Notes under the pieces: model-generated | What the model was told of the DNA's origin: nothing | What the model saw: only the letters and a program-made list of their open reading frames with translations | Databases searched by the model: none | Program-made: the position numbers and the translations under genes | Assembly: GCA_020891255.1 (NCBI GenBank) | Contig: BQFW01000003.1 | Span: forward strand, 1 to 64,000 | Direction of reading: 5' to 3' | DNA from: Entomortierella parvispora E1425 | Lineage: Eukaryota > Fungi > Mortierellomycota | Length of the DNA stretch: 64,000 nt | Part shown: one piece after another, positions 1-16,584 of the stretch | Layout of the letters: each line of letters starts with the position of its first letter | Numbering within the stretch: the stretch's first letter is position 1

Positions 1-12
1 GCCAAGGCTCAG

Positions 13-763
13 ATGACACACATTGTCAAGTCCATGAAGCCTCCAAGACCTTTCAGAGCACGCAAAACTGCTGCCGAGGCCGCAAGACCAACGATTGCTC
101 CTGTCCGAGTATATTTTTCTGGTGTTCAGTCCGGGCCTCTCAAGGTTTTCAAGGCAAAGTTGCGTGGTTTGAGAATTTGTACCTCACTGATTTACAACAT
201 CTCATTTGTTGGGAAGTCTATGTGCGAATTTTTGGTCGATGCTGCCTACCGAGCCAAGTTCATTGAGTCTATGAAAAGCTTCACTTTCAGACACTTGCCC
301 AACTATGACCCAGCCGTTCCTCAAGATCCCAATGTCACTGAAGAGACTGCAGAGCTTCTGAGAGGGGCGTACATTCGCCGCCTTGAAACAACGGCTTCAA
401 CGACCAACCGCGATTTCGTGCGAGATGATTTCCTGAGCATGCTTGCTGCAGCAGATCCCACAGCTCCCACATCTGCCACAGATCTCCCTGATCTCTCTGG
501 ACCGATGGACACTGGCACTGTTGCCGCGACGGCCTCTGCTTCTTCCGGGCTGGTGGAAACTGATATCCCTCTGACTGGTGCTGCTTCTGAAGCCGCCTCT
601 GCTGCAATGGATATTGATCCCCCTGGCTGCTACTGCAACCGCCTCTGATTCTGAGCTAGTTGACACTCATACGCATCCCGCTGCCGAAGACACAGCTGGT
701 GCCAGTGCTGACGCTCTAAGCGCTAATGAGGAACCCACACGCCCCGCTTCCTCTCATGAATAA
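13..763 (+). CDS. LINE ORF1 (putative nucleic-acid-binding protein), one frameshift near 600-650
   Basis: ORF 13-648 continues in another frame (..ATASDSELVD..PASSHE*) to TAA 761-763, overlapping the ORF2 ATG at 756. It lies directly upstream of the APE domain. Confidence 0.7.
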
Positions 764-3700
764 TCAGGTCCTCCGTACTGGTTACTTGAACTGCCGCGGT
801 CTTCAGGCAGGTTCATTTGACAGAATCGTTTCTTTCGTTTCGGCCCATCCCCCCCCCTTCGATATCATCTTCTTATCAGAGACATGGTATATCTGCCCTG
901 ACTATTACAGTCGCCATCCTCTCTTCCTTTGTTCTACGCCCATACCTGGAAGTCGACCAGTTAATGGCCGGCTTTATGGTGGTATCATCTGTGTTGTCTC
1001 CCACCAACTCAAGCGATCACACTGCACCTTTTCAGTCACTCGGCACTCAATTGACGTGTCCATCTTTGGCACCAACATCCGCGCCTTATATCTTCCTCCT
1101 TCTCTCAAGAACCCCAGCTTCCGTTCAGCTTTTGTTCGGATCCCGTCGCCCACCTTTCTTCGAGATCTCGTCCAGATATTCTTCTCGGAGACATCAACAC
1201 CAAGCTAGGAGAACCAAACCTTCCCCTATCGGTGAACGTGTCACCATAGTTCAGGAGCTGGTCCATCATTACCATTACAACCGAGTTTTCCCTCTTCTGT
1301 CTACGCCAAGAACCATCATGTATTGGCTCGCTTTCACCCAGACTTCTCTTGGAGGTATGAACGGGTTGACCCTCAGTATGGACAGATACGGACCACAGTC
1401 TCATGTCTTGCAAGTTCACGCCTCGTGATATACATGATACTGGCACTACCGACGAGTGTTACCGTATCAGTCTGAAGTACTTGGAACTAAAAGCAGTTCG
1501 TTCTCTGCTGTGGTTACTACATGGAACTGGCCAACCAATTCGACAAGTTTATCATGGACACTGTATCGCGCGTACGGCGACTCTCTGACGCGCGTTCTTT
1601 GGATGGAGTTTCTCCAAGACAGACAAGCAGTGGTGGATCATCTTGACGATTGTCTTTCTTCAGCTATCTTGACAGCGGCTGAAGAAGCATGCGGCTCTTA
1701 TGTCCCCAGCGTCATTCGTACTACTCCAGACAAGCTCTCTGATTCTTTGTCTTCGGTCCCGAAGATGAATGACGCCATCCGTATCTTCAAACGAGCGTGT
1801 CGCAGCCAGGTGGTGGCTCTGAAATCTCGGGACCCTACCATCTCTCCAGTGGCAGATGTTGTCTCGCACTACAGGTCTGTTTTCACTCAGCCCGATCCAC
1901 GATTCCTACCTGCGGCTCGATCCCCTTACCGTGGCATCTCCTTTGAGCCTGATCCTGGCTTGGACGATATGTTTACGAAGGATAACATGCAAGCAATCTG
2001 GAAGAAATACCCGACCAACGCCTCTGGTGGAGAGGATGGGATCCATGTCCAACTCCTACGAGCACTTCAAGGCACCGAGCTTCCAGAACACATTGCTGGC
2101 CTTTTCAGGATTTGCTGTTTGCTCGGTGTCACGCCATCATCATGGAATGTCTCCGTAATCAATCCTATTCCGAAGACAGAGGGTGCTACGACCATTGACA
2201 AATTCCGGCCAATTTCCCTTACATTGATGATTCGGCGGACCTTCGAAAAGTTCTTTTGGGACATCTTTTGGAGTCTGATGCCTCCAAGCTTCATCACACT
2301 CAAGCTGGCTTCCGTAACGGATTTTCAACTTTGACTCATGCATTGGTTGCTGACGACTGTGCTATCCGCGGACAAAAGTATCGTGTCTTTTACGATTTTG
2401 CCCAAGCATATGATACAGTCCCAGTGCCTCTGCTACTTTCAAAGATGAAAACCCGAGGAGCATCCGCTCAGATTTTGTCGCTCGTAGACGCCCTCTTTGT
2501 CGGCACATCTACTAAGGTTATCGTCAATGGGAGGCAGACAGAGTCTATTCCCTGAGCCGAGGCCTGCTCCAAGGCTCCATCTTGTCTCCTCTATTGTTTG
2601 ACATCTTTATCGACGACCTGGCTCACAAGCTTAACAAGGATACTCCGGACCCGAAGAAAATACCGCGAGCGCTGTTGTACGCCGACGATATAACAGCTGG
2701 ATCCCATGCACTGCACCACTTGCAAGTTACTTCCAATGACTTGGTCGACTGGTGCCACGAGAACGGTATGACGATCAATCTCGCTAAATGCGGGGTGGTT
2801 GGTCTGACCCATGGTGATCGTGACTTGGTCCTTCGCGGTATTGGCCCAATCCCTCGGGTTGAATGCTACAACTACCTTGGATTCCCATACAAATCCAGAG
2901 GGATCGACTGGGCTGAACACTTGAAATCCATGGCTTTAAAAGCATCAAAGACTCTGAAGTTCTGCGAAGCCAGGGGTAATTCCAAGTGGTCTGCAGGTCT
3001 ACGGCTAGCTTTGTATCGCGCGTTTGTCCGCTCTAGAATGGAATATGGTGCAGGCATCATGTACCACTGGATCCAGAATGACAGCAAGTCTAGGACAGAG
3101 CACTTGAAGGCTATAGCGACAGTCCAAGACGCGGCCCTGAAATGGATTTTGGAGTTCAAGGACCCTACAAAGGTTACTCACTCATTTCTTGCCTTGCCAA
3201 CTATCTACGTGCGATTCTCCGACTTGGCCTGCCTCCTTACGGACCACTTTATTGGAATGGATGGGAACAACCCAGCAAGAACCCTCCGTGATGTCCTCTT
3301 CGGCAATGTTGGCCGAAATAAGGACCGGATTCTTCCAAAGTGCCACAAGCACCCGGACCGCCTGTTGCATCAAAAATTATCTGGCAAGACTTAGAAGAGA
3401 AGAAAAAGTCGATTCATTGAAGGTCTGGCTGCGGAAGAGGTTCCTTGACGAGTGCTTCCGGACGCTGCGGCTTTGCAAGTATTTCGAGCCTCAGATGCGC
3501 ACGAGAGGTATAGGCCTGTTACCGCCATCTACTTCAAGTCACTCCGCCTACGCAAGAACGCAATTGCTTGGCACCTGAACAAATTCGCTTGTGGAGCGCG
3601 CTGTTCGGAATGCAACAACATTTTTCATCAAACCCATGTTGTCGATTGCGGCTGGCAAGAAAAGCTCCTTGATCGTGCCCCTCCGAAAGTTGTTGCCACC

Positions 3701-3846
3701 TTCTTGGCTCTGCCCCGCTTGCACCAAACAAGTGTCGTCCCAACTTCGTCGACTTCCTCCTCAAGGAGAGGCACCTTGCCTCCTTGGCCGAGGCATTTGG
3801 CTGGTTGGAATTCTGGATGCGTCCTCGGGAAAACTACGATGTATAG
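756..3846 (+). pseudogene. LINE ORF2 (AP endonuclease + reverse transcriptase + C-terminal CCHC), frameshifted as assembled
   Basis: Starts MNNQVLRTGYLNCRGL at 756. Motifs continue across frame changes (e.g. ~1150, ~2255, ~2553, ~3390, ~3510, ~3715). Ends ..NFVDFLLKERHLASLAEAFGWLEFWMRPRENYDV* at TAG 3844-3846. Confidence 0.88.
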
Positions 3847-6800
3847 TCTTGGATGTTGTCTGTCAGTCAGTCAGTCTTTTTTTTTTTTTTTTTTTTTTTT
3901 TTGTTCGTGCTCCCTCGCGCCAGAAAAAAAATAAAATAAAAAAATTGACTACAATTGCTGCCACCCTGCTCAGATCGTTGCTGCCCCATGTCTTCTCTCC
4001 TAGTAAGTGTTGATCATTACGAAAGAAGATATCTCATTCTAACGACCTCCATGGTCTTTATTGTCCATATTGTCCAGCAATTAGTCCATCCAGTTGATGA
4101 CATCTGCTCCTTTTGCCCGTGTCCTCACACTTCTCGTATTCGCTCCCTTGGTAAGCATCTGCTCTTCACGCCTACAATACCCCTTTCAATGGAAGAGAGA
4201 TAGAAAGAAAGAGCAATCGTTCTAACCATTTCAACTGCTTTGTCCATAGAGTTAAGAATGTCAATGGTATATATCTCCTCGGTCCTTTGAATCCTTGCTG
4301 TCAATTCAAGCGGCTGTCTCCTTTTCGCCTACTCTGCTCCCTGCTTCCGTGGCGGCGCCTTGCGGCCTTGACATGATCTGAACTGACAGGGGTTCTGGGG
4401 GTCGAGACTGGGCCTCTTTTTTTTATGCTCCAAAAAAACATTCAGCTTCCAAGCTGCAGATGGCGGCTGTTCCTGCCCGGTTGTTATATCTGCTCTAGTT
4501 TCAGTAAGTGCAGCCTACAATTCATACATTCGATGTTCCCTACTGAGGAAGATAAACGGAGAAAGTATTTCAACTGACGGCTTTAGTTGATTTTATATCC
4601 TACGTAGTCTGACCCAGCGTCTGGTCTTCGGTCCTCCATTCAGGTGAGATGTTTCCATTCTTCCGCCTCTTCCTTGCAGACCGTTGCCACATTGTCATTG
4701 TGATTGCTCCTACCATGTCAAAGGCGCCCTTTTCTGGTCTTTCTCTCCGGACTTCCATCCTGGCCAATTGGTCTTTTTCAGCCCACTCATACCTGCTTAC
4801 TCCTCTTGTAGCGGCAACTTGCGGTCTTGACTCAACTTTACGGTTTCCTGGGAGTAGACGTCGTAATTTCATCATGGCATGGACCACAGGAGCTTTGTTA
4901 CATGGTTTGGACACATCCTTTCTGTCTTGCTTCCATGTCTATTCCCTGCGGTGAGTGAAGTTGGCTTGTATGGAAGAGAGATAAAGAAAACTTATTCTAA
5001 CGCCCCTCTTGTTTCATCGTCCATGTAGTCGGGCATGTTGACAGCGTCTGCTCGCCTCGGCTCTAGCCAGTTCCATGTTCCTTGCGATCATTGCCCTAAG
5101 TTTTTGACTGACCGGAACTCTGGATCGGGCGCTGGTTCTTTTTGATGGCGAGGTCCGTCTCCGCTCAAAAAAGAAAGGAGGGGCAGCCGTCACAGTTCTG
5201 TTGTCCCATGTCTGGTCCGGTCCATGTCTTCCGCTGAATCGTTGAATACCAACTTTATGCTGGCCAGAAATCCCTCCTGCCCCTGTCGGGTCGGGGCACC
5301 AAGGGGATGAAACCACATTCACGATTCGCATGCGTGAGTCCTGGATCTGCTAAGGTCTGCCCTCGTTGTCGTCTATGGCTGCTTCCTGGAGTCCTTCAGT
5401 CGAATGCCTATCGTTGCCTGTCGACTCCATGCTGGCTCTTTCAATCAAGCTGTTGCATGTGTCATTACATGTCATCTCCAAGCCGCTCTTTCGATGAGGT
5501 TGATCTGCCCACCTTTGAAGAACCTCTCCTACTACCTCCGAGGACTGGGTGTTCAAAGGCTGAACCCAAAGCCCGCCCATATGGGTCTTGAGTTTTTGGC
5601 ATGAAAGACTGGCATTGTTCCTGCTGCTCCGCGGTCTCGACTCAAGTTTCTGGTTTTCTGAAGCGCTGGGAGCTACATCTTGGGTCTGTTTCGTGAACCA
5701 TATTCGCAAAAAAGAAACAAACTGGCTGTATCCTGCCGTTCCTACCGTTCCTGCAGTCCTGGAAGTTGCATCCGTTCGTATGGTAAGTTTTTTGGGGCGT
5801 GTCGTTGAAAAGAGACAAAGACGGATGGGCAGCTCCAACGAGGACGAGAATCGAGTACGAGATGGTTGACGCACGTGATGTGCCTTTTTTTCGTTTTTTT
5901 TTTTTTTTTTTTTTTGTCCGCAGCCAAGCATGTTCAGGAAGACAGGGTATCCTCAGCCTCAGACCTCACAGCACTGGTCTAGTCGACAGGAGTTCGGAGG
6001 AGGGGTCCTTGATTGTGTGGTTCGTTGCCCGCTTAGAAAAAAAGAGTTCCTGGCCTGCTTTGTTGCAAATCCCACTTGTTCAATCCGCTTCTATGGTAAG
6101 TGTTGTTCCTCACGCGTTTGAAAGCCTCTCGTGCAAAAAGACAAATGGAGGGACAATCGTTCTAACCCTTCCCATGTTGTCGATATAATCAGGCAGGCTA
6201 CTTATCTTTGTTCACACCGCCGTTTTATTCGCTCCTTTGGTAAGTGTCTGCCACGCCTGTGATACTGTGATATCCCTTTCGAGGGATAGAAAAAAAAAAA
6301 GCAATCGTTCTAACGACTTTAGCTGATTTTATTGTCGATATAGTCAAGAGCGTCAACGGTATCCATTCTCCTCGATCCTTGAGCTCCTTGCCGTCAATCC
6401 AAGTGGGCTGATTCTTTTCGCCTACTACGATTCCTGCTTTAGAGACGGCGCCTAGTGGCTTTTGCATGAGTCCTAGACAAACTCGCACACTTGACTAGGT
6501 GTGGTCTGATTCCACGCAAAATAGCAAGAGGAGAGGGCCGTTGCTGGGTCGTCGTCGATAAGTTCGTTCCAGTATTCCTTGGGGTCGAGCCGTTGAATAT
6601 TGCCTCCGTGATGATTTCTCAGTCAAGTTTATCACCCTCATCGATACCAAGGCGATGAAGGGTGAATCCATCACCCAATCGGTACTCAAGAATCCTGGAT
6701 CTCCGTTGAGAATTGCTACCGTTGTCGCCTGTGGCCGCTTCCTGGAGTCTTTCGGTCGAACTGATGCCTGTCGTTACCTGTCAACCACATGTTGGCCCAC

Positions 6801-7639
6801 TCAGTCACATTGTTGCCTGTCGCTGCCTGTCAACTCCATGCTGGTCTGCTTAGTCAAGTTGTTGCCAGGCGTTGCTTGTCGACTCCTGCCTGGTCTATTC
6901 AGTCAAGTTGCTGCATGTGACATTACATGTCATCATCATGCTGTCCATCCAGCCAAGCTGGATTGCCCTCCTTTGACCCTCCGCTCCTGCTCCTTCCGAG
7001 GACCGGATGTCAGAAGGATGAGCCCATAACCTGCACCTGTGGGTCTTGAGGTTTTGCATGAAAACCTGCGTTGTCCTGCTTCTGCACGGTCTCGATTCAA
7101 GTTTCTGGTTTTCTAAAACGCCGGAGCCATGCCTCGAGTCTAGTACTTTTTGTTGCATGGGTCCACATTCGCACAGAAGACATAGACTGGTTGCACCCTG
7201 CTGTCCTTGCTGTCCTGGATGTTGCATCCGTTCGTACGGTAAGTTTGAGAAGAGTATCTTTTGAAGAACGGGGAAAGAGTGATTTCTCAGAGCCGCAAAG
7301 GCAAAATGAAAGAAAATTGCGACAAGCCACGGACAGCGGAAAGGGAAAAAAAAGAAATGCATTCTAACGTGGTCTCTTCTTGCTGTTGCCAACCTAGCCA
7401 AGCATGTTCAGGCCAGCATGTCTCTTTTGGCTTGCGGACAAGGGTTTCCGTTTCCTTCTCCAGTGACCTTGACCTAGGTTCTGACTCGACTGAAGTTTCG
7501 AATCAGGTCGAGGTCGGGGGGTTTTTTTCTGGTTGTGTGGTCCGTCTGACGCTTTGCAAAATGAAACGACTTTCTGCACTGCCCGCTCCTCTGGTAAGCA
7601 AGGCGACTCTTCACGCGTCTGAAATCCCTCCCAAGGAAA

Positions 7640-7700
7640 GAAGAGAGAGAGAGAGAGGAGAGAGAGAGAAAGAGAGAGGAGAGAGAGAGAGAGAGAGGAG
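7640..7700. repeat. (GA)n microsatellite inside the intron module at 7594-7756
   Basis: Near-perfect GAGAGA run visible in sequence. Confidence 0.9.
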
Positions 7701-7767
7701 GAAGAGAAAAAAGAAACGCTCATTCTGACGTTCTCTTCGTTTTATTGTCTACGCAGTTAGGAAGTCA

Positions 7768-7985
7768 ACAGCGTCCTCTTCCTGGTCCTGGTCCTCTTCC
7801 TGGTCCTGGCCCTCTTCCTGGTCCTGGTCCTCTTCCTGTCCTCTTCCTGGTCCTGGCCTCTTCCTGGTCCTGGCCTCTTCCTGGTCCTGGCCTCTTCCTG
7901 GTCCTGGCCTCTTCCTGGTCCTGGCCTCTTCCTGGTCCTGGCCTCTTCCTGGTCCTGGCCCTCTTCCTGGTCCTGGTCCTCCTCT
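7768..7985. repeat. 17/18-bp minisatellite (TCTTCCTGGTCCTGGCC[C]), about 12 imperfect copies
   Basis: Direct inspection; same unit as 9285-9660. Confidence 0.9.
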
Positions 7986-8599
7986 TGGCTCATTATTCTG
8001 GCCAAACCCTCTATGGCCGGATCTAGCAATCGAAGGACTTTTCTGTCCGCTTCTGCCATGCCGTTCTGTCAGGCTGTGTCTGCCTCCGACCTGCTGCGGC
8101 CCTGATTTTTTTTTTTTTGGTTGCGGAGCCAAAAAAAAAAAAAGCTTCACCCCAGGCGTGTCGTTCTGTCCGCTCCTGCAGTAGGTGTTGCTCCTCAAGC
8201 GCTTGATGTTCCTTCTTGGAAAAAGAATCCATGCTGATGTCCTCTTGGTTTTTGTCCATATAGACCTAGCGCCTGCCCGCGCTTGCTTCAGTGGTATTTT
8301 GGTTGGGCCCCTTGCTTCCTTTGGTCCTTCAGTCGAGCAGATCTCCTCTGGTGGGTCTCCCCAGATTGTCCATTGTGGGCCTTGGGTCTTTGGGTCTGTC
8401 TGGTCCAGTTGTCGCTAGGGGCGCTCTCTGTGCTCCATCATTCAAGCCCATCGCCTGTCACCAATCTCCTTAGCCAGAGGGCACTTGCCCATCTCCCCCA
8501 CATGTGGGGGGATGGAGGCTGAGACTATGTGAGCTGGGACTAGGGCACCAGGACCGACTCTGTTGGCTTTTGCCCTGTGGCTACTTCCTGGAGTCTTTC

Positions 8600-8890
8600 G
8601 GTCGAACCGTTGCCTGTCTTGCCTGTCGACTCCATGCTCCTGGCCCATTCAGTCAAGTTGCTGCCTGTCGACTCCATGCCTGGCCCATTCAGTCAAGTTG
8701 CTGCCTGTCGTTGCCTGTCGACTCCATGCCTGGCCAATTCAGTCAAGTTGCTGCCTGTCGTTGCCTGTCAACTCCATGCTTGGCCCACTCAGTCAAGTTG
8801 CTGCCTGTCGTTGCCTGTCAACTCCATGCTTGGCCCACTCAGTCAAGTTGCTGCCTGTCGTTGCCTGTCGTTGCCTGCCGACTCAATGCC
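8600..8890. repeat. Tandem repeat of 40/50-bp units built from a 10-bp subunit (TTGCCTGTCG); diverged homologues at ~5410-5450 and ~6770-6910
   Basis: TTGCCTGTCAACTCCATGCTTGGCCCACTCAGTCAAGTTGCTGCCTGTCG recurs at 8761 and 8811. Confidence 0.85.
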
Positions 8891-8934
8891 TGTTGCATGT
8901 GACATTACATGCCATCATGAAGTTTCTGATTTCT

Positions 8935-9221
8935 GAAACGCCGGAGCCATGCCTCGAGTCTAGTACTTTTTGTTGCATGGGTCCACATTCGCACAGAAGA
9001 CATAGACTGGTTGCACCCTGCTGTCCTTGCTGTCCTGGATGTTGCATCCGTTCGTACGGTAAGTTTGAGAAGAGTATCTTTTGAAGAACGGGGAAAGAGT
9101 GATTTCTCAGAGCCGCAAAGGCAAAAAGAAAGAAAAGTGCTGCGAAAAGTCACGGACAGCGGAAAGGGAAAAAAAACGAAATGCATTCTAACGTGGTCTC
9201 TTCTTGCTGTTGCCAACCTAG
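8935..9221. repeat. Near-identical segmental duplicate of ~7115-7397 (includes an intron module)
   Basis: Shared ACGCCGGAGCCATGCCTCGAGTCTAGTACTTTTTG...GTAAGTTTGAGAAGAG...CATTCTAACGTGGTCTCTTCTTGCTGTTGCCAACCTAG. Confidence 0.9.
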
Positions 9222-9284
9222 CCAGTGACCTTGACCTTGGTTCTGAGTCGACTGAAGTTTCGGATCAGGTCGAGGTCGGGGTTT

Positions 9285-9660
9285 TCTTCTTGGTCCTGGC
9301 CCTCTTCCTGGTCCTGGCCCTCTTCCTGGTCCTGGCCCTCTTCCTGGTCCTGGCCCTCTTCCTGGTCCTGGCCCTCTTCCTGGTCCTGGCCCTCTTCCTG
9401 GTCCTGGCCCTCTTCCTGGTCCTGGCCCTCTTCCTGGTCCTGGCCCTCTTCCTGGTCCTGGCCCTCTTCCTAGTCCTGGCCCTCTTCCTGGTCCTGGCCC
9501 TCTTCCTAGTCCTGGCCCTCTTCTTGGTCCTGGCCCTCTTCCTGGTCCTGGCCCTCTTCCTGGTCCTGGCCCTCTTCCTGGTCCTGGCCCTCTTCTTGGT
9601 CCTGGCCCTCTTCCTAGTCCTGGCCCTCTTCTTGGTCCTGGCTCTTCCTAGCCCTGGTCC
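9285..9660. repeat. 18-bp minisatellite (TCTTCCTGGTCCTGGCCC), about 20 copies
   Basis: Direct inspection. Frames read LALFLV, SWSWPS or PGPGPL on + and EEGQDQ, RKRART or GRGPGP on -. Confidence 0.95.
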
Positions 9661-10071
9661 TCCTCTTGGCTCATTATTCTTGGCCAAACCCTCCTGACTG
9701 GATCTGACAATGGACGGACTTTTCGCTTCCCTGCATAGTTGCTATTCACTTCTGTCCTGCGGGCTTGATCTTTTTTTTTTTTTTGGCGGAAACAAAAAAA
9801 AAGCTTCACTCCAGCGTGTTGTTCTGTCCACTTCTGCAGTAGGTGTTGCTTCTCAAGCGCTTGGTGTTGCTCTCTTCTTGGAAAAAGAATCCATGCTGAT
9901 GTCCTTTTTGTTTTCTTGTTCACATAGACCACAGCCAGCCGGGCTTCTCGCTTCAGTGGTCTTTTTGGTTGGGCCTTCTCTCCCTTTGGAGACTGAGCTA
10001 GGAGGTCGATCTTGGTCTTTGCCTCTATTTGCTCTAGTTGTCACTGGTTGGCGCTCCATTCAATTATGACC

Positions 10072-10920
10072 ATCATGTCACTGCATGTCGATTCCCTGTG
10101 GCCAAGTTGTTGATCTCGGCGCGGATCTTCCCCCCTGGCCGGCCCCCACCCACTCCCCCCGAGGGACTGGGGGCCAGGGGGGTTTCTCCCACTTGCCCAT
10201 CCCTTTTGTGTGAGGGATGGGAGTTGGGATTGGGGGCTGATTCTGCAGCAGCAGCATCTATTGCTATTGCCCCAGATGTCACCGATGGACGCTTCCTGCG
10301 CGCCATCCACTCAAGCCCGTCGCATGTCGCTGCATGCTGATTCCCTTCAGCCAAGTTGTTGATCTCGGCGCGGATCCTCCCCCTCTGGCCGGCTCCTGCC
10401 CACTCCCCCCCGAGGGACTGGGGGCCAGGGGGTTTTCTCCCCACTTGCCCATCCCTTTTGTGTGAGGGATGGGAGTTGGGACTGGGAGCTGATTCTGCTG
10501 CAGCAGCCTCTATTGCTGTTGCCCCAGATATCACCGATGGACGCTTCCTGCGCGCCATCCACTCAAGCCCGTCGCATGTCGCTGCATGCTGATTCCCTTC
10601 GGTCAAGTTGTTGATCTCGACGTGGATCTTCCCCCCTGGCCGGACTCGCCACCCCACTCCCTTCTGAGGGAATGGAGTCCAGGAGGGGGGTTCTCTTCTC
10701 TTCTCTCCCCACTTGCTCATCTTCCTCACCTGTGAGAAATGAGATTTGGGGCTGACTCTGCTGCTGCTGCCCTCTGCCGCGGCTGCCCCAGATGCCACCG
10801 ATGGACGCTCCCTGCGGTCCATCCTTCAAGCCCATTGCAGACTGACTGCTCCAAGTTGGTCTGTTTTGCCCCCCCTCTGGCCGGCTTCCTCCCACTTCCC
10901 CCGGGGACTGGGGGCCAGAG
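10072..10920 (-). repeat. About 3.3 tandem copies of a 249-252-bp GC-rich unit, spanned by a 249-aa ORF (10073-10822, -)
   Basis: CAAGTTGTTGATCTCG starts at about 10103, 10352 and 10604, with a partial copy at ~10853. The periods are multiples of 3. Confidence 0.85.
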
Positions 10921-11638
10921 GAGGTTTTAGCAGCCCTATCCATAGCCCACTCGTGAGCCGTGGCAATGGGGCTCGGGAGGCCACTCGCCATCAGCTATCC
11001 CATTAGCTTGCACTTGCAGCTTCTTCTTGCGCCTTTCTGCTCACCGTTGCCGTTCAAGACTCTGCCAGCTTGCGCATCCCAGCTCGCCCATGCGAGCGCG
11101 CAAGCAAGGACTCCCCATTCCCCGCTCACCCCTACTTGGGGTGACATGGGCGGGGCTTTCCTCCCATGCAGGCAGACAAGACAAGACAAGGACACCCTAC
11201 TTTCCCCACCTTGCACCCTAACTTGGGTGCCCTGGGCATGGCTCACCCCAATCTGGGGTGTCCCCAGCGTAGGGTCTCCCCATTGCAGGGTTTCCCCATT
11301 GTAGGGTTTCTTCACCCTAAAGTCCGTCCACCCAGTCTCCCCCCAGAGACCCCAACTTTCCCCTGACCCCCACTCAGGGGGTCATTTGGGTGTGACCAAG
11401 AGACCAAGAGTTGGAGAATGCCCTCATGCATCTTGTCAGGGTCGTGGATGCATGCGATTGGTCCGATCGGGTTCCATCGATCACGCCATCGTCAGGGTGG
11501 ATTGAGATGGAGTAAGATGGAGCAAGATGGAAAAGATGAAAGAGATGCCCAACCCAATTTGGACCTCTTTCTCTTCTCTCCATTCTCTCCATTCCTCCAT
11601 TCCACCCACCCACCCCCACCAACAACAGCACTCCCACC

Positions 11639-12476
11639 ATGAACCGCCACGCTGCCCCCCAGCACTCCCCAGTGAGCTTCAAGACAGTTGTCCAAACCCC
11701 CAAGAAGGTCACCATCGACGACTTTGTTGGCGAGAATGGCCTGGTTCCCTTAACACAGGCCCACAGCCACCTTAAGGGCTCCATGATGAGTCCTAGACCC
11801 ATGAACCTCCGCCCCCGCCAGAGGCGGGCCTCCCCCACCCACACCGTCTTCGGCGGGTCCGATGACGAGGGGCAGGGGAGCGAGGACTCCAAGGAGGACA
11901 ACCACCAAGATGACGACGCCGAGATAACGGACCCTCCCTCGGGACAGGGAGGACGAGACGGGGCAAGGCCATCACGTTGCTGACACCACGTACGTGGCTG
12001 ATGCGGACGATGAGGCTACCCAACCATTGCCGGCGCTCGAGCAAGAACAAGACCTGTTGGAGATGGTGCCACAGAGCCCGCTGGAGACAATGGGGGGTGG
12101 ACTCCCCCCCCTGTCACAGGCAGCGACTGGCACTGTCGACCAGGCGCCCGTGGTTGACGTTCACCAACCACAAGACGCCCCAACCCCTATGCATCCGAGG
12201 CAATATACCCAGGCCCTGGAGACCTTCGTTCAGACTCTCCAAAGGCGCTTCGAGTATGTCGAAGCGCGCCTCAGGATACACGAGCAAGCCCAAGTAGGCG
12301 AACATTCGGCGATGCAAGGCTTGGATGACCTGGAGGACCAGTTCATGGATTTGAGTGATCAGATCTCTCATCACCTCTTCCGCCTCAGGCCACAGGCCCA
12401 TCCCAAGCCCAAGCGTGCCCACTCCCGCCCCAAACCATACCACTCCCGCCCCGCCTCCAGGCGTGGCCCCAGATAG
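11639..12476 (+). CDS. Orphan protein: acidic/disordered N-terminal half, coiled-coil-like segment, basic C-terminal tail; one frameshift near 11930-11980 (assembly error or pseudogene)
   Basis: ORFs 11639-11983 and 11994-12476 overlap as open frames over ~45 nt. CT-rich leader before the ATG, GC3-rich codons, AT-rich 3' flank. Confidence 0.55.
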
Positions 12477-12740
12477 CCCCGTAAACCATCAAGCATTGAG
12501 CCGACTGGCATACCCCATTAAAGAATTAAAACCTAAAAACCCTAAACCTTATTTTTGGGTTTATTGCCCTAAACTCGCGTATTTATACAGTTTAACGATG
12601 TCCTGGAGTGTCTGTGCATCGTTTGCGCTATTCAGACTGACCGTACGATGCGTTTTCTGTTTGTCCTAAAAAGGAAATATTCAATTTATTGGTGGCTTAG
12701 ACTTCCTGGACTATTAGGTGTTCCCTTTGTTTACTTTTGC

Positions 12741-12774
12741 TCCCGGGTTCGAATCCGGCTTCGGCCTCGCTTTT
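12741..12774 (+). pseudogene. Isolated tRNA-like 3' half (B-box/T-arm plus acceptor strand followed by TTTT)
   Basis: TCCCGGGTTCGAATCCGGCTTCGGCCTCGCTTTT. No matching D-arm or 5' acceptor strand recognised upstream. Confidence 0.4.
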
Positions 12775-13843
12775 CTGAAGATATAAAAACAATGTGTTTT
12801 TTTTCCTTCGTAGAGATATGAGATACAGTGCATTAAAGAGCTATCCTCATAAGTATTCCACCAAGCTAACAACATCGTCAATCCATAAGGTGGATCTTGA
12901 GCAATTGCATTTTTTAATCTCGTTTTTTTTGAAATTCGAACACTCTTTTCTCGATATCTACGTTGATGACCTAGGTGATTTTTATATGGGGAGGTGCCTA
13001 TTCATCAGAGGTCAATATTCATCAAGAAAAACTGGCGAGTGGTAAGGTGGTTGTGGTGTAATTGCTGTTCTTATATTTCGATTTTTTTTTTGAAAAAAAA
13101 ATTCTCTCTTAAGATGGAGGAGTGAAGTGGTGACAGGAGCCGAGAGCTATCCACTTACGACAATTCGTAGCTGCATTTCATGAAGTACGAGAAGGAAAAA
13201 GAGCAAAGTCTGCAGTTTTGGGTGATAGAACGACTGTTGGGCGCTTGAAAGGACAATCCACTAGCAACAGGAGAGTGTGAACCGTGCACATGCTTGCTCT
13301 CTCGAGACTTCAGCGAGGAACTTGCTGCTCTCTCAAACAGTCTTTACTCTCCTCATCGTGCATGTAGACAAGAACATCAGCTCGTGCAGTTGTCATGTAG
13401 TTTTTTTATTAAAACTTGTACACGCTAGACAAAAGTAGGAACAAGATGGCAGAGACGAGGGCGCAAAACACATGAGACTGCGGTGACTTTGCCCTGGAAC
13501 CGTCTCGTTCTTCGCTACTGCATGCTCTGCCTGAGGGCCAGAGAAATCTAGCAGTTGATGGTAGAGAGGACTTACTGAGAAGTGCGCGCCCCTGAATTAA
13601 TCACCTCATGCTTCCTGCTTGCATCTCGTTTGTCGCATGTCCCACTCTGGTTCATGGCTAGATTGAATGAGCGCTCTCCGTATGATTAGATGTAAAAGAA
13701 GTTGTGGTTGACGACAAAGGGAAGGAGTAGCGAGCAACGCGTGAGAAAGGAAGGAGAAAGCGAGAGGAAACGCTCAAGCTTGCGACAACACGAAAAGAAG
13801 AGAGCGAAAACAAAGACAGGGGCACAAAAGACCCGTTAATGTT

Positions 13844-14320
13844 TGATGCAAGAGTCGAGTTGGATGCAATGGGTCGGATGAGACGGCGGCTGCAAAAGGT
13901 GAAAGAGAGGAGTTGGATTCATGAGAGAAGAAGGATGCATGAGAGGACAGATGCAAGAGAGGAGAGATGCAGAGAGGAGAAAGATTCAAAAAAGAAGACG
14001 GATGCAAGAGACGGGAGGACAGGGGAAGGATGCAAGAGTCGAGGAGAAAGGAACGGATGCAGGAATCGAGAGAGGCGAGAGGAAAGGGATGCAAAAAAGA
14101 GACAAAAGAGAGAGAGGGATGCAGGAGACAAGAGAGAGGGATGCAAGAATGGTGGAATGCAGGAGACAAGAAGGTCGAACGATGCAAGAGACGAGATGGA
14201 TGCAAGGGACGACATGGATGCAAGGGACGAGATGGATGCAAGGGACGAGATGGATGCAAGGGACGACATGGATGCAAGGGACGACATGGATGCAAGGGAC
14301 GACATGGATGCAAGGGACGA
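13844..14320. repeat. Purine-rich minisatellite: about 20 RGATGCAR motifs resolving into an 18-bp tandem array (GGATGCAAGGGACGACAT), about 7 copies at ~14180-14320
   Basis: Direct inspection. Confidence 0.88.
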
Positions 14321-16584
14321 GAGGGAGACAGACGGGAGAAAAAGACACAAGTTCAGGGACGCTCCATCCAACAAACAACAACCGCCCGTTTCTCCCTGCC
14401 CTTCGGTCCTTTTTTTTTTTTTGACAAACAATGTCTTGGGAGGGAAGAGGACAGGAGGAAAGAGAAGAGGAGGCAAGAGAAGGAGAGAAGAGGGGGAGGA
14501 GAAGAGACGGACAAGAGAGAGGAGAAGAGACGAGCAAGAGGGAAGAGAGGTAGTTCCGAAAAGGAAGACGACCAAGAGAGAAAAGAGAGAAAGGAGAAAG
14601 GGGGAAAGACGACCATCAGTCCGCACGACAACAAAAAGAAACAGGAGGCTGAAAACTGCTCTTCCTCTCCCCCCTTGGATGGACATGCCCACCCTGAAGC
14701 GGAGATGGTTGCCACAACGGCAGCGCAACATCTTCTTCCAGATCTCTTCGTTTTGTTGCGCCTCGGGGAGTGGGCTGGAAAGGCGTCAGAACATGAGGAC
14801 TTTTGTCGACGTGTTTTTTTTTTTGAAGTTTCCTCTGCTGCTGAGGCTCAAGGACATTTGTTTCCAACAAGCCAAGGTCGAGTTAAGAACCCATCAGTCC
14901 GGCCATGAGCGAATGCTGTAAATGGAAAAGAAAAGAGGAATGGAAGAGACAAGAGGGGTGGAGGAGGCGAGATGGCAAGCCCAAGAGGCAGGAGACAACG
15001 AGAGATGGGAGAAACGTGCGTTGTTTTTGTTGCCATTTATTGGGACTCGTTTTCGGGCTCTTTTTCTCTCCCCTCGTTTCGTTTCTGCTATTCTCGCCCC
15101 ATCCAAAAGAACAATTATCTTGGGGTGGAGGAGAGGGAACAGAGAAAAGAAGGGAAGAGGGAAGAGAGAAATAGGAGAGAGAAGAGAGAAATAGGAGAGA
15201 GAAGAGATCATTGAGCCAAGCAAGAGAGAAGAGAGGTAGTTCCGAAAAGGAAGACGAGAAGAGATCATTGAGCCAAGCAGAATCCATTGCCAAACGATCA
15301 GTCGCAACGGACAGGGTGCAGGCACTTTCCCGACAGCGATTTTTTTTTTTTGTCGGCCAGCAGCTGGAAAACAATGTACCCTCCAAGGTTTGCGACAGGA
15401 GTTCCGTGTCTTTTCATTTTGGTGGACGTGGACAACCTGCTGTGCAGATACAGGGAGAGTTGCAAAAGCAGAAACCAGGGTCATTGTGGCCTGCCCCTTC
15501 AGATCTCCCCAACGGTCCGTTGCTCTTCTTTGGACGAAGAAGAATGGTTGTACTCAAACGCGTCCTAACATGAGAGGGACGTTTGTCGACGTTTATCCAC
15601 TATTGCCAATGAGCGAAGGACAATGATCCAAACCTAGCCATGAGTGATCCATTTTCATAGTCTCTTCTTGCATGTTCACCCACTAGCCACAACTTGCCCC
15701 CTGAGAATGCACTTGCGCTGATGCTCTTTGCTCAATTGCCATCTGCGTGTCGAACAAACCAAGGTAGCCATGCATGCACCACTGTAAAAGAAAATAATCT
15801 CTTCAGCGCCTTCCTACCTGGCTCTCGCTCTCTCGAAGCGCGTCCTTACGCGATTTTTTTTTTTTTTGAAGATCCCTTGCAATTGCTTTGAATTGCACAA
15901 CCATCTGCAAGGCCCATGCGCCCGGGTCTCATAGCATGATGTCAACTGGCTTGAAAAAGCAAAGCTAAGCCTTGTCCTGCAAGTATCCTTTCGTGCTCGT
16001 TCATCACTGTTCTCTGTTGTTCTTTTTCCAAGAAATACTTGATTCCCCTGAGACGATCAGCACATTGTTGTCTTGATACACTTCCACGGATATCCTTTGC
16101 GATCTTGAGGGTTCAATCCGCCCTACCTATTTTGTATCTTTAGTCCCAAATTTCAAGGAGACGAAAAGGGATCTTTGACAACTCCGCTTGAACGCTCTTT
16201 GATACTTGACATCTGGCAAAGGAAGGGGGGCAGCAAAGGCATGTCAATAATCAATGTTGAGGGATACCAGCTTTACCAGGGCCAATAGTAATCCCCTCAA
16301 TTGTTGCTACAATCTCCCTTGATTTCAATGCAGAGGCCACCCTTTCTCCCGCCCTGCTGTTGCATTGATCTCCGATAGCTTTGGACACTCCTTGACACGC
16401 TCCTTTCTTCTATCCAGTAGATTCATCTTTCCCTGCTTGTGCTCTCTCCTCTTGATTCTGTTTTCACCTTTGATCCCGTCTTCTTTTAACAGGGAGCAGG
16501 GTGGGGTCCAGTTCTTCACTCCTTTCCTCTCTTCTTTACCATCTCCTTCAGGCTTGTACTTAACAACCCCAACCCTAATCAACA

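Follow-up and report, generated by a model that had tools for sequence, protein, structure and literature searches.

Introduction

Non-coding host genes of small nucleolar RNAs (snoRNAs), such as UHG and GAS5, and the subtelomeric repeat blocks of fungi, such as the yeast Y' and TLH regions, are two points of reference for the locus described here, an array of twelve intron-like modules within a ~6-kb stretch of the soil fungus Entomortierella parvispora E1425. Two further points of reference concern the ways in which introns multiply. Introner-like elements occur as many near-identical copies dispersed in unrelated genes (PMC4457414), and introns can also be duplicated by tandem genomic duplication (PMC4974935), which has been called a rare route (PMC4457414). 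The array lies 4-10 kb from the start of contig BQFW01000003.1 of assembly GCA_020891255.1, which was built from Nanopore reads and polished with Illumina data (PMC8759367). The window analysed here is the first 64 kb of that contig, and its coordinates are those of the record. Our analysis provides strong support for an origin of the array by nested tandem duplication of an intron cassette, and leads us to favour, by a modest degree, the combined statement that an array of this origin gives, or recently gave, rise to a spliced non-coding RNA under selection for its spliceability.

Twelve homologous intron-like modules

An earlier note, made from the sequence alone, had listed twelve + strand units with their positions, donors, branch sites, YAG ends and spacers, and every one of these particulars was recovered in our analysis (Table 1). 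The donors are GTAAG in nine modules, GTGAG in one and GTAGG in two, and the branch sites are TTCTAAC in seven, CTGAC in two and CTGAT in two, with TTGAC alone in i5. GT with G at +5 and a 3' AG, which characterize U2-type introns, are present in all twelve, and the 3' end is YAG in each case. The further U2-type feature, CTRAY at a short and fixed distance, is found in 11 of the 12, where the branch A stands 24-35 nucleotides (nt) before the 3' end; the exception is i5, with only TTGAC at 54 nt from its 3' end. Intron lengths range from 75 to 163 nt, and the inter-unit exons, or spacers, from 47 to 895 nt.

Alignment of the twelve units with MAFFT revealed common internal blocks together with common flanks, ~30 nt long on the upstream side and at least 20 nt long on the downstream side, at a mean column identity of 43%. 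In the unanchored alignment the invariant columns are GT, G at +5 and the branch T, and the branch A is present in at least 90% of units. A profile built from the twelve modules with nhmmer matched these twelve and nothing else in the window, and leave-one-out profiles, from which near-identical twins were also excluded, found every module again (E 3e-24 to 4e-3), the strongest match elsewhere in the window having an E value of 0.026. Because this recovery beats any other match in the window, the modules appear to be much more alike than other introns of the E. parvispora genome, which answers in the affirmative a comparison with random genome introns proposed in the earlier note; the mutual resemblance and common flanks reported there are likewise borne out by alignment, profile and leave-one-out recovery. 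A loose intron pattern was counted 12 times, against 5.4 +/- 2.7 in dinucleotide shuffles, or about twice the chance level, and what distinguishes the modules is their homology rather than pattern count or density. Each cassette consists of a normal fungal U2-type intron, 75-163 nt long, preceded by ~30 nt of flank and followed by another ~20-60 nt.

Duplication history of the array

Comparison of the array with itself by BLAST resolved three macro-units of ~2 kb, nested head to tail on one strand and carrying co-duplicated spacers (Table 1). The module tree supports the groups (i5, i8, i11), (i2, i7) and (i10, i12), and leaves the remaining modules unresolved, with long branches (0.28-0.76 changes per site). 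This pattern means an old round of single-cassette duplication followed by later duplication of cassette groups. The features of a tandem array are thus present in full, with one strand, nested head-to-tail order, co-duplicated neighbours and variant breakpoints in paralogous units. That the array arose within a multi-copy block, through rounds of nested tandem duplication acting on an intron cassette, is well supported and in our judgement very probable, and the suggestion of repeated duplication in the earlier note gains support from the alignment, the macro-units and the tree together.

Mechanistically, a single cassette was first multiplied one by one, through unequal crossover or slippage, and groups of cassettes were later copied as macro-units of ~2 kb, with minisatellites of 17/18-mer and 49/50-mer units expanding in the spacers. 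The cassettes would not be self-mobile and would have spread only together with the surrounding DNA. By eye, the 17/18-nt minisatellite (CCTCTTCCTGGTCCTGG; 7757-7981) looks like the downstream flank of the cassette (tctcctcggtcctt; 4250-4300 and 6344-6400), and this flank may be its origin.

The four-copy repeat block

Four copies, about 98-99% alike, exist in the genome of the stretch that runs from a long interspersed nuclear element (LINE) to at least window 12.5 kb (Table 1), and window 4-13147 is the segment that was compared with the other three, referred to as L003, L005 and L004. The block consists, in order, of an upstream region, a full-length LINE, the array, 252-bp repeats and an orphan open reading frame (ORF). 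Beyond the LINE promoter, high identity between copies extends upstream for at least 1.8 kb, and because of this continuation the duplicated unit is a segmental repeat block, 17 kb or more in length, rather than a LINE-bounded element. In L004, i8 is joined to i11, leaving nine modules, and this join is the signature of unequal crossover; the missing counterpart of i9 in macro-unit 3, flanks included, is further evidence of that process.

A contig start truncates three of the four copies, in each case with the 5' side of the LINE toward it, and because they meet the contig start in one orientation a subterminal position of the block is suggested; the absence of telomere repeats from the first bases of the L004 and L005 contigs weakens this reading. 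The block extends over 1-13147 in the window, 7963-21080 in L003, 3287-15841 in L005 and 4219-16853 in L004, and the two copies on BQFW01000015.1 are separated by 38.9 kb. Identity between L005 and the window falls to 76-82% right of about window 12.5 kb. This fall, from 99% to 82%, is marked by an (A5-6 CCCTA) minisatellite that contains the telomere-like CCCTAA (window 12530-12580; L005 15826-15910; L004 14947-15030), with two units in the window and in L003, six in L004 and eight in L005. A telomere-targeted retroelement was considered and found no support: the CCCTA repeat is a 10-11-mer and not a telomere array, and block identity runs far past the 5' side of the LINE. No similarity to the window was found in the region that lies upstream of this element. 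A purine-rich low-complexity stretch at 13800-15300, with an 18-mer and other short tandem repeats and with long spurious ORFs on both strands, is just 66-83% alike between block copies.

Differences between the copies are mostly 1-nt homopolymer indels (at 4110, 4397, 4740, 5002, 5348, 5402, 6135, 6414 and other sites), and most of the apparent variants in Illumina contigs equal the L003 version. Many of these differences are probably residual Nanopore assembly errors in multi-copy DNA, which artificially break the LINE and orphan ORFs. Our comparison with the contigs of sequencing runs covered window 3960-7770; in this interval the contigs of three other runs labelled as the same species contained nothing at 80% likeness or above, which points weakly to a strain-specific block.

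Splice signals and selection

All twelve modules keep GT, G at +5 and YAG, and 11 of them keep CTRAY at 24-35 nt, despite divergence of 0.3-0.8 changes per site. That the signals are complete on module branches of such length suggests that splicing has been under selection, with statistics that are modest. We estimate that chance retention of three strict donor sites in about seven independent lineages, at ~0.65 identity per site, has a probability of ~1e-4. Between positional orthologues compared without anchoring, signal identity is 27/32, 7/9 and 16/16, where the background is 0.70-0.77. The profile found no signal-less module copy in the window, where about half of such copies would be detectable and ~5 detections would be expected were they as common as intact ones. 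We consider it an evenly balanced proposition that transcription of the + strand, now or in the recent past, yields a transcript that is spliced into a non-coding RNA, and that selection preserves the spliceability of each cassette copy. A spliced non-coding precursor, one of the readings put forward in the earlier note, would thus be our best guess as to function. A stranded RNA-seq data set of this strain is available as DRA013164 (PMC8759367), and Nanopore reads as DRA010776.

Several observations weigh against this proposition. The signal-conservation tests on individual pairs are weak (p 0.046, 0.52 and 0.015), and the four block copies are too alike for a test of selection. Recognition of the modules depends partly on their signals, which introduces a detection bias, and scrambling the signals leaves about half of the modules undetectable, so that decayed copies may lie unnoticed in the long spacers. 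In L004 the i6 acceptor is AA, and a further AG follows after 4 nt. Neither a promoter nor a 3' end was defined. In addition, Rfam searches of the introns detected no snoRNA or other family at the gathering threshold, only hairpins at chance level appearing at E-value thresholds, and exact-protein look-ups of two in-exon ORFs, aimed at RNA contigs, returned no match. The statement in the earlier note that splice signals have outlasted coding capacity is upheld as regards complete signals in non-coding sequence, and carries the modest statistics given above as regards selection.

Features around the array

The array lies directly 3' of the LINE. The complete LINE copy, in L003, has a TATA box, a four-intron 5' leader, a first ORF (ORF1) of 796 amino acids and a reverse transcriptase. 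In this region (L003:5518-6330; BQFW01000015.1, ~39.8-40.6 kb) the TATA box reads ggtataaatac and the leader has introns of the GTACGT/GTATGT type, the last of which ends 15 nt before the ORF1 ATG; a search of the leader introns with the module profile gave no match. All LINE copies found sit inside the same duplicated block, and relatives of the LINE in metagenomes show at most 37% identity, on short contigs that contain no modules.

Motifs composed of a T-run, a short GC core and an A-run occur at 3877-3945, 4417-4440, 8107-8145 and 9770-9808, at a distance of 30-65 nt from the i1, i3, i10 and i12 donors, on their upstream side. Long A-U hairpins are one possibility for these motifs, and promoter-like poly(dA:dT) tracts another. 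Downstream of the array, each 252-bp repeat unit combines an intron-like pattern of ~141 nt with inverted G/C runs; the idea that these repeats are diverged modules was rejected, local alignment being at chance level (z at most 1.8). The orphan ORF is read as two ORFs of 114 and 160 amino acids, which fuse into one frame on removal of a single G, as in L005. Its product is acidic and proline-rich with a coiled-coil-like part, is unrelated to LINE ORF1, and has no homologues among 5.8 billion proteins.

Table 1. Modules, macro-units, neighbouring features and copies of the repeat block (window coordinates unless a contig is named)
Feature	Position	Strand	Description
i1	4003..4077	+	GTAAGT, TTCTAAC, CAG; positional partner of i6
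i2	4151..4249	+	GTAAGC, TTCTAAC, TAG; sister of i7
i3	4504..4607	+	GTAAGT, AACTGAC, TAG
i4	4951..5028	+	GTGAGT, TTCTAAC, TAG
i5	5783..5923	+	GTAAGT, weak TTGAC branch, ~30-nt T tract, CAG; older sister of i8 and i11
i6	6096..6192	+	GTAAGT, TTCTAAC, CAG; AG is AA in block copy L004
i7	6240..6343	+	GTAAGT, TTCTAAC, TAG
i8	7239..7397	+	GTAAGT, TTCTAAC, TAG; 92-96% identity with i11
i9	7594..7756	+	GTAAGC, TTCTGAC, CAG; expanded (GA)n tract; no counterpart, flanks included, in macro-unit 3
i10	8181..8263	+	GTAGGT, TGCTGAT, TAG; sister of i12
i11	9059..9221	+	recent copy of i8
i12	9839..9927	+	copy of i10
Macro-unit 1	4137..5930	+	older copy, 71-73% identity to unit 2 (self-BLAST)
Macro-unit 2	6226..8324	+	self-BLAST
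Macro-unit 3	8574..9989	+	81-96% identity to unit 2 (self-BLAST)
17-nt minisatellite	7775..7981		in spacer; period not a multiple of three
50-nt minisatellite	8620..8870		in spacer; 49-nt version at 6765-6914
18-nt minisatellite, 21 copies	9285..9662		paralogue of the 17-mer array
Non-long-terminal-repeat (LINE) retrotransposon, 3' two thirds	1..3876	+	cut by contig start; stop codon 3844-3846, then (TCAG)3
T26, GC-rich core, A-rich run with AATAAA	3877..3945		read from the sequence; just weak hairpin-type Rfam matches
252-bp GC-rich tandem repeat	10051..10860	+	own GTGAG...CTGAY...YAG pattern in each unit
Orphan ORF	11639..12476	+	probably one frame of ~278 amino acids broken by 1-nt indels; in all four block copies
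Block copy L005	BQFW01000015.1:1-17129		99.2% identity to window; 12 modules
Block copy L003	BQFW01000015.1, 34.3-55.5 kb		98% identity to window; 12 modules
Block copy L004	BQFW01000010.1:1-17896		99%, then 91% identity to window; 9 modules

Discussion

The twelve modules described here provide a framework for weighing how a family of related introns could have come to lie at one locus, and whether splicing is what has kept it recognizable. One possibility is that the array is a modular protein-coding gene family on either strand, antisense included, as could be thought from the pyrimidine-rich + strand that leaves many frames open, from the reading IRSY/AKHV (the slash marks the junction) at i5 and i8, and from small single-exon genes called in the array by AUGUSTUS. 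These gene calls vary in strand and position among near-identical block copies and look like ab initio noise. Removal of all twelve introns leaves no long ORF in any frame, and the same holds for the spliced product after the indels of the Illumina contigs are applied, so that the remark in the earlier note about the lack of a long ORF at the junctions extends to the full product. The paralogous spacers are separated by many 1-nt indels, their mismatches show no modulo-3 bias (p 0.38-0.90), and a minisatellite has a period of 17 nt in one paralogue and 18 nt in the other. Because of the 1-nt indels and the lack of codon periodicity, neither strand of the array, antisense included, looks coding, and IRSY/AKHV and similar junction peptides, whose general form I-R-S-(L,F,Y)/(V,A)-K-(N,S,H)-V had been noticed earlier, reflect no more than DNA similarity on a pyrimidine-rich, stop-poor strand. 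We regard a coding family as extremely improbable. It is less far-fetched, and still improbable, that the array belongs to a coding transcript, either as a long multi-intron 5' leader of the 11639-12476 ORF or as a read-through 3' untranslated region (UTR) of the LINE. The LINE, the array and the ORF share one strand and one order in all four copies, the LINE with its own TATA box and four-intron leader means that the block does contain a multi-intron leader, and the orphan ORF, 1-nt indels apart, is probably intact. Set against this are the AATAAA-bearing A-rich run between the LINE stop and i1, the 1.7 kb of GC-rich repeats between i12 and an ORF that lacks homologues, and the unrelatedness of the LINE leader introns to the modules. 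In the case of LINE read-through, many introns in a 3' UTR are expected to expose the message to nonsense-mediated decay.

A different possibility, raised in the earlier note, is a self-propagating, introner-like mobile intron that copies itself with its flank to new sites, and the presence of related introns with full splice signals agrees with it. Its expected dispersal was not observed: across the window and ~60 kb of other loci, the profile matched modules only in the array and in the three paralogous blocks, contig depth over i1-i7 in the strain's contigs showed no extra pile-up at 80% likeness or above, and no target-site duplications were found at the modules. The modules share a single strand and a nested tandem arrangement in which the spacers were duplicated along with them, unequal crossover has altered their copy number in L004, and where introners insert into coding sequence with unrelated host flanks, these have common flanks in a non-coding context. 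Introners as described in 2012 reportedly have an unusually stable predicted fold, whereas the module introns, compared with shuffles, are not unusually stable (z -0.53 to +1.27, mean +0.17). The strain's DNA contigs contain no intron-precise joints, and no intron-less DNA copies were seen in them; because joints at the intron borders are absent, the module copies were not made from spliced RNA. Since there are no dispersed copies, no intron-less DNA copies and only ordinary fold stability, the introner identity of the modules is unlikely, and we assign it a very small probability. More weight is due to a neutral relic, which we nevertheless consider unlikely: a dead piece of a gene or UTR, passively multiplied in a duplication-prone subterminal block, would now be neither transcribed nor spliced, and its complete signal sets would be explained by detection bias and chance. 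The marginal tests on individual pairs, the half of signal-less copies that would evade detection, the lost acceptor of i6 in L004, and the minisatellite-rich nature of a region that is absent at the likeness given above from the contigs of three runs under the same species label are all in keeping with such a relic. They must be set beside module branches of 0.28-0.76 changes per site on which the donor, YAG and nearly all branch-site features survive, beside the low estimated probability of retaining donor sites by chance, and beside the failure to find any signal-less copy when several were expected on the assumption of equal frequency.

The reading that we favour, nested duplication together with a spliced non-coding RNA, also admits a more specific and doubtful form, in which the array would be a selected 'intron-first' non-coding gene in subterminal repeats whose exons drift and in which splicing alone is conserved. 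The useful product would then be the act of splicing or the excised introns themselves, with possible roles in intron-derived RNAs or in spliceosome engagement on LINE run-out transcripts that marks or tames the LINE.

If the twelve introns are spliced, the array would represent a clear natural case of introns multiplying with their flanks by plain tandem duplication, and of selection preserving the splice signals of a transcript without coding content, and it bears on the origin of new introns without a mobile element. Repeat blocks close to the ends of fungal chromosomes would also gain an unusual component, a spliced multi-intron non-coding unit beside an intron-bearing LINE. Without transcription, the array would be no more than fast-evolving repeat DNA.

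Comparison with known systems places these features in context. The E. parvispora block resembles fungal subtelomeric blocks such as yeast Y' and TLH in being large, of low copy number and in one orientation at several sequence ends, and in its near-identical copies, strain variability, minisatellites and retroelement; it differs from them in having no telomere repeats at the contig starts and no helicase gene. To our knowledge, no multi-intron non-coding array has been described as part of a block of this kind. With the snoRNA host genes UHG and GAS5 the array would share a multi-intron transcript, unconstrained exons and kept intron features, all of which are predicted for the array; unlike those genes, it has no Rfam family in its introns and no evidence of structure, and small RNAs of undescribed families are possible.

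The introner-like elements of Dothideomycetes and the introners of algae are similar to the array in that a family of related spliceosomal introns occurs in one genome (PMC4457414). The array is unlike them in its twelve diverged copies at a single locus, its common flanks, its lack of dispersal and the absence of any special fold. It departs from introns made by tandem genomic duplication through duplication at least a dozen times over in nested rounds, its non-coding sequence, its variable spacers and its position inside a multi-copy block, but it is like them in that intron and exon flanks have been copied head to tail on the same strand, in that working-looking splice sites are kept, and in that copy number shifts by unequal crossover.

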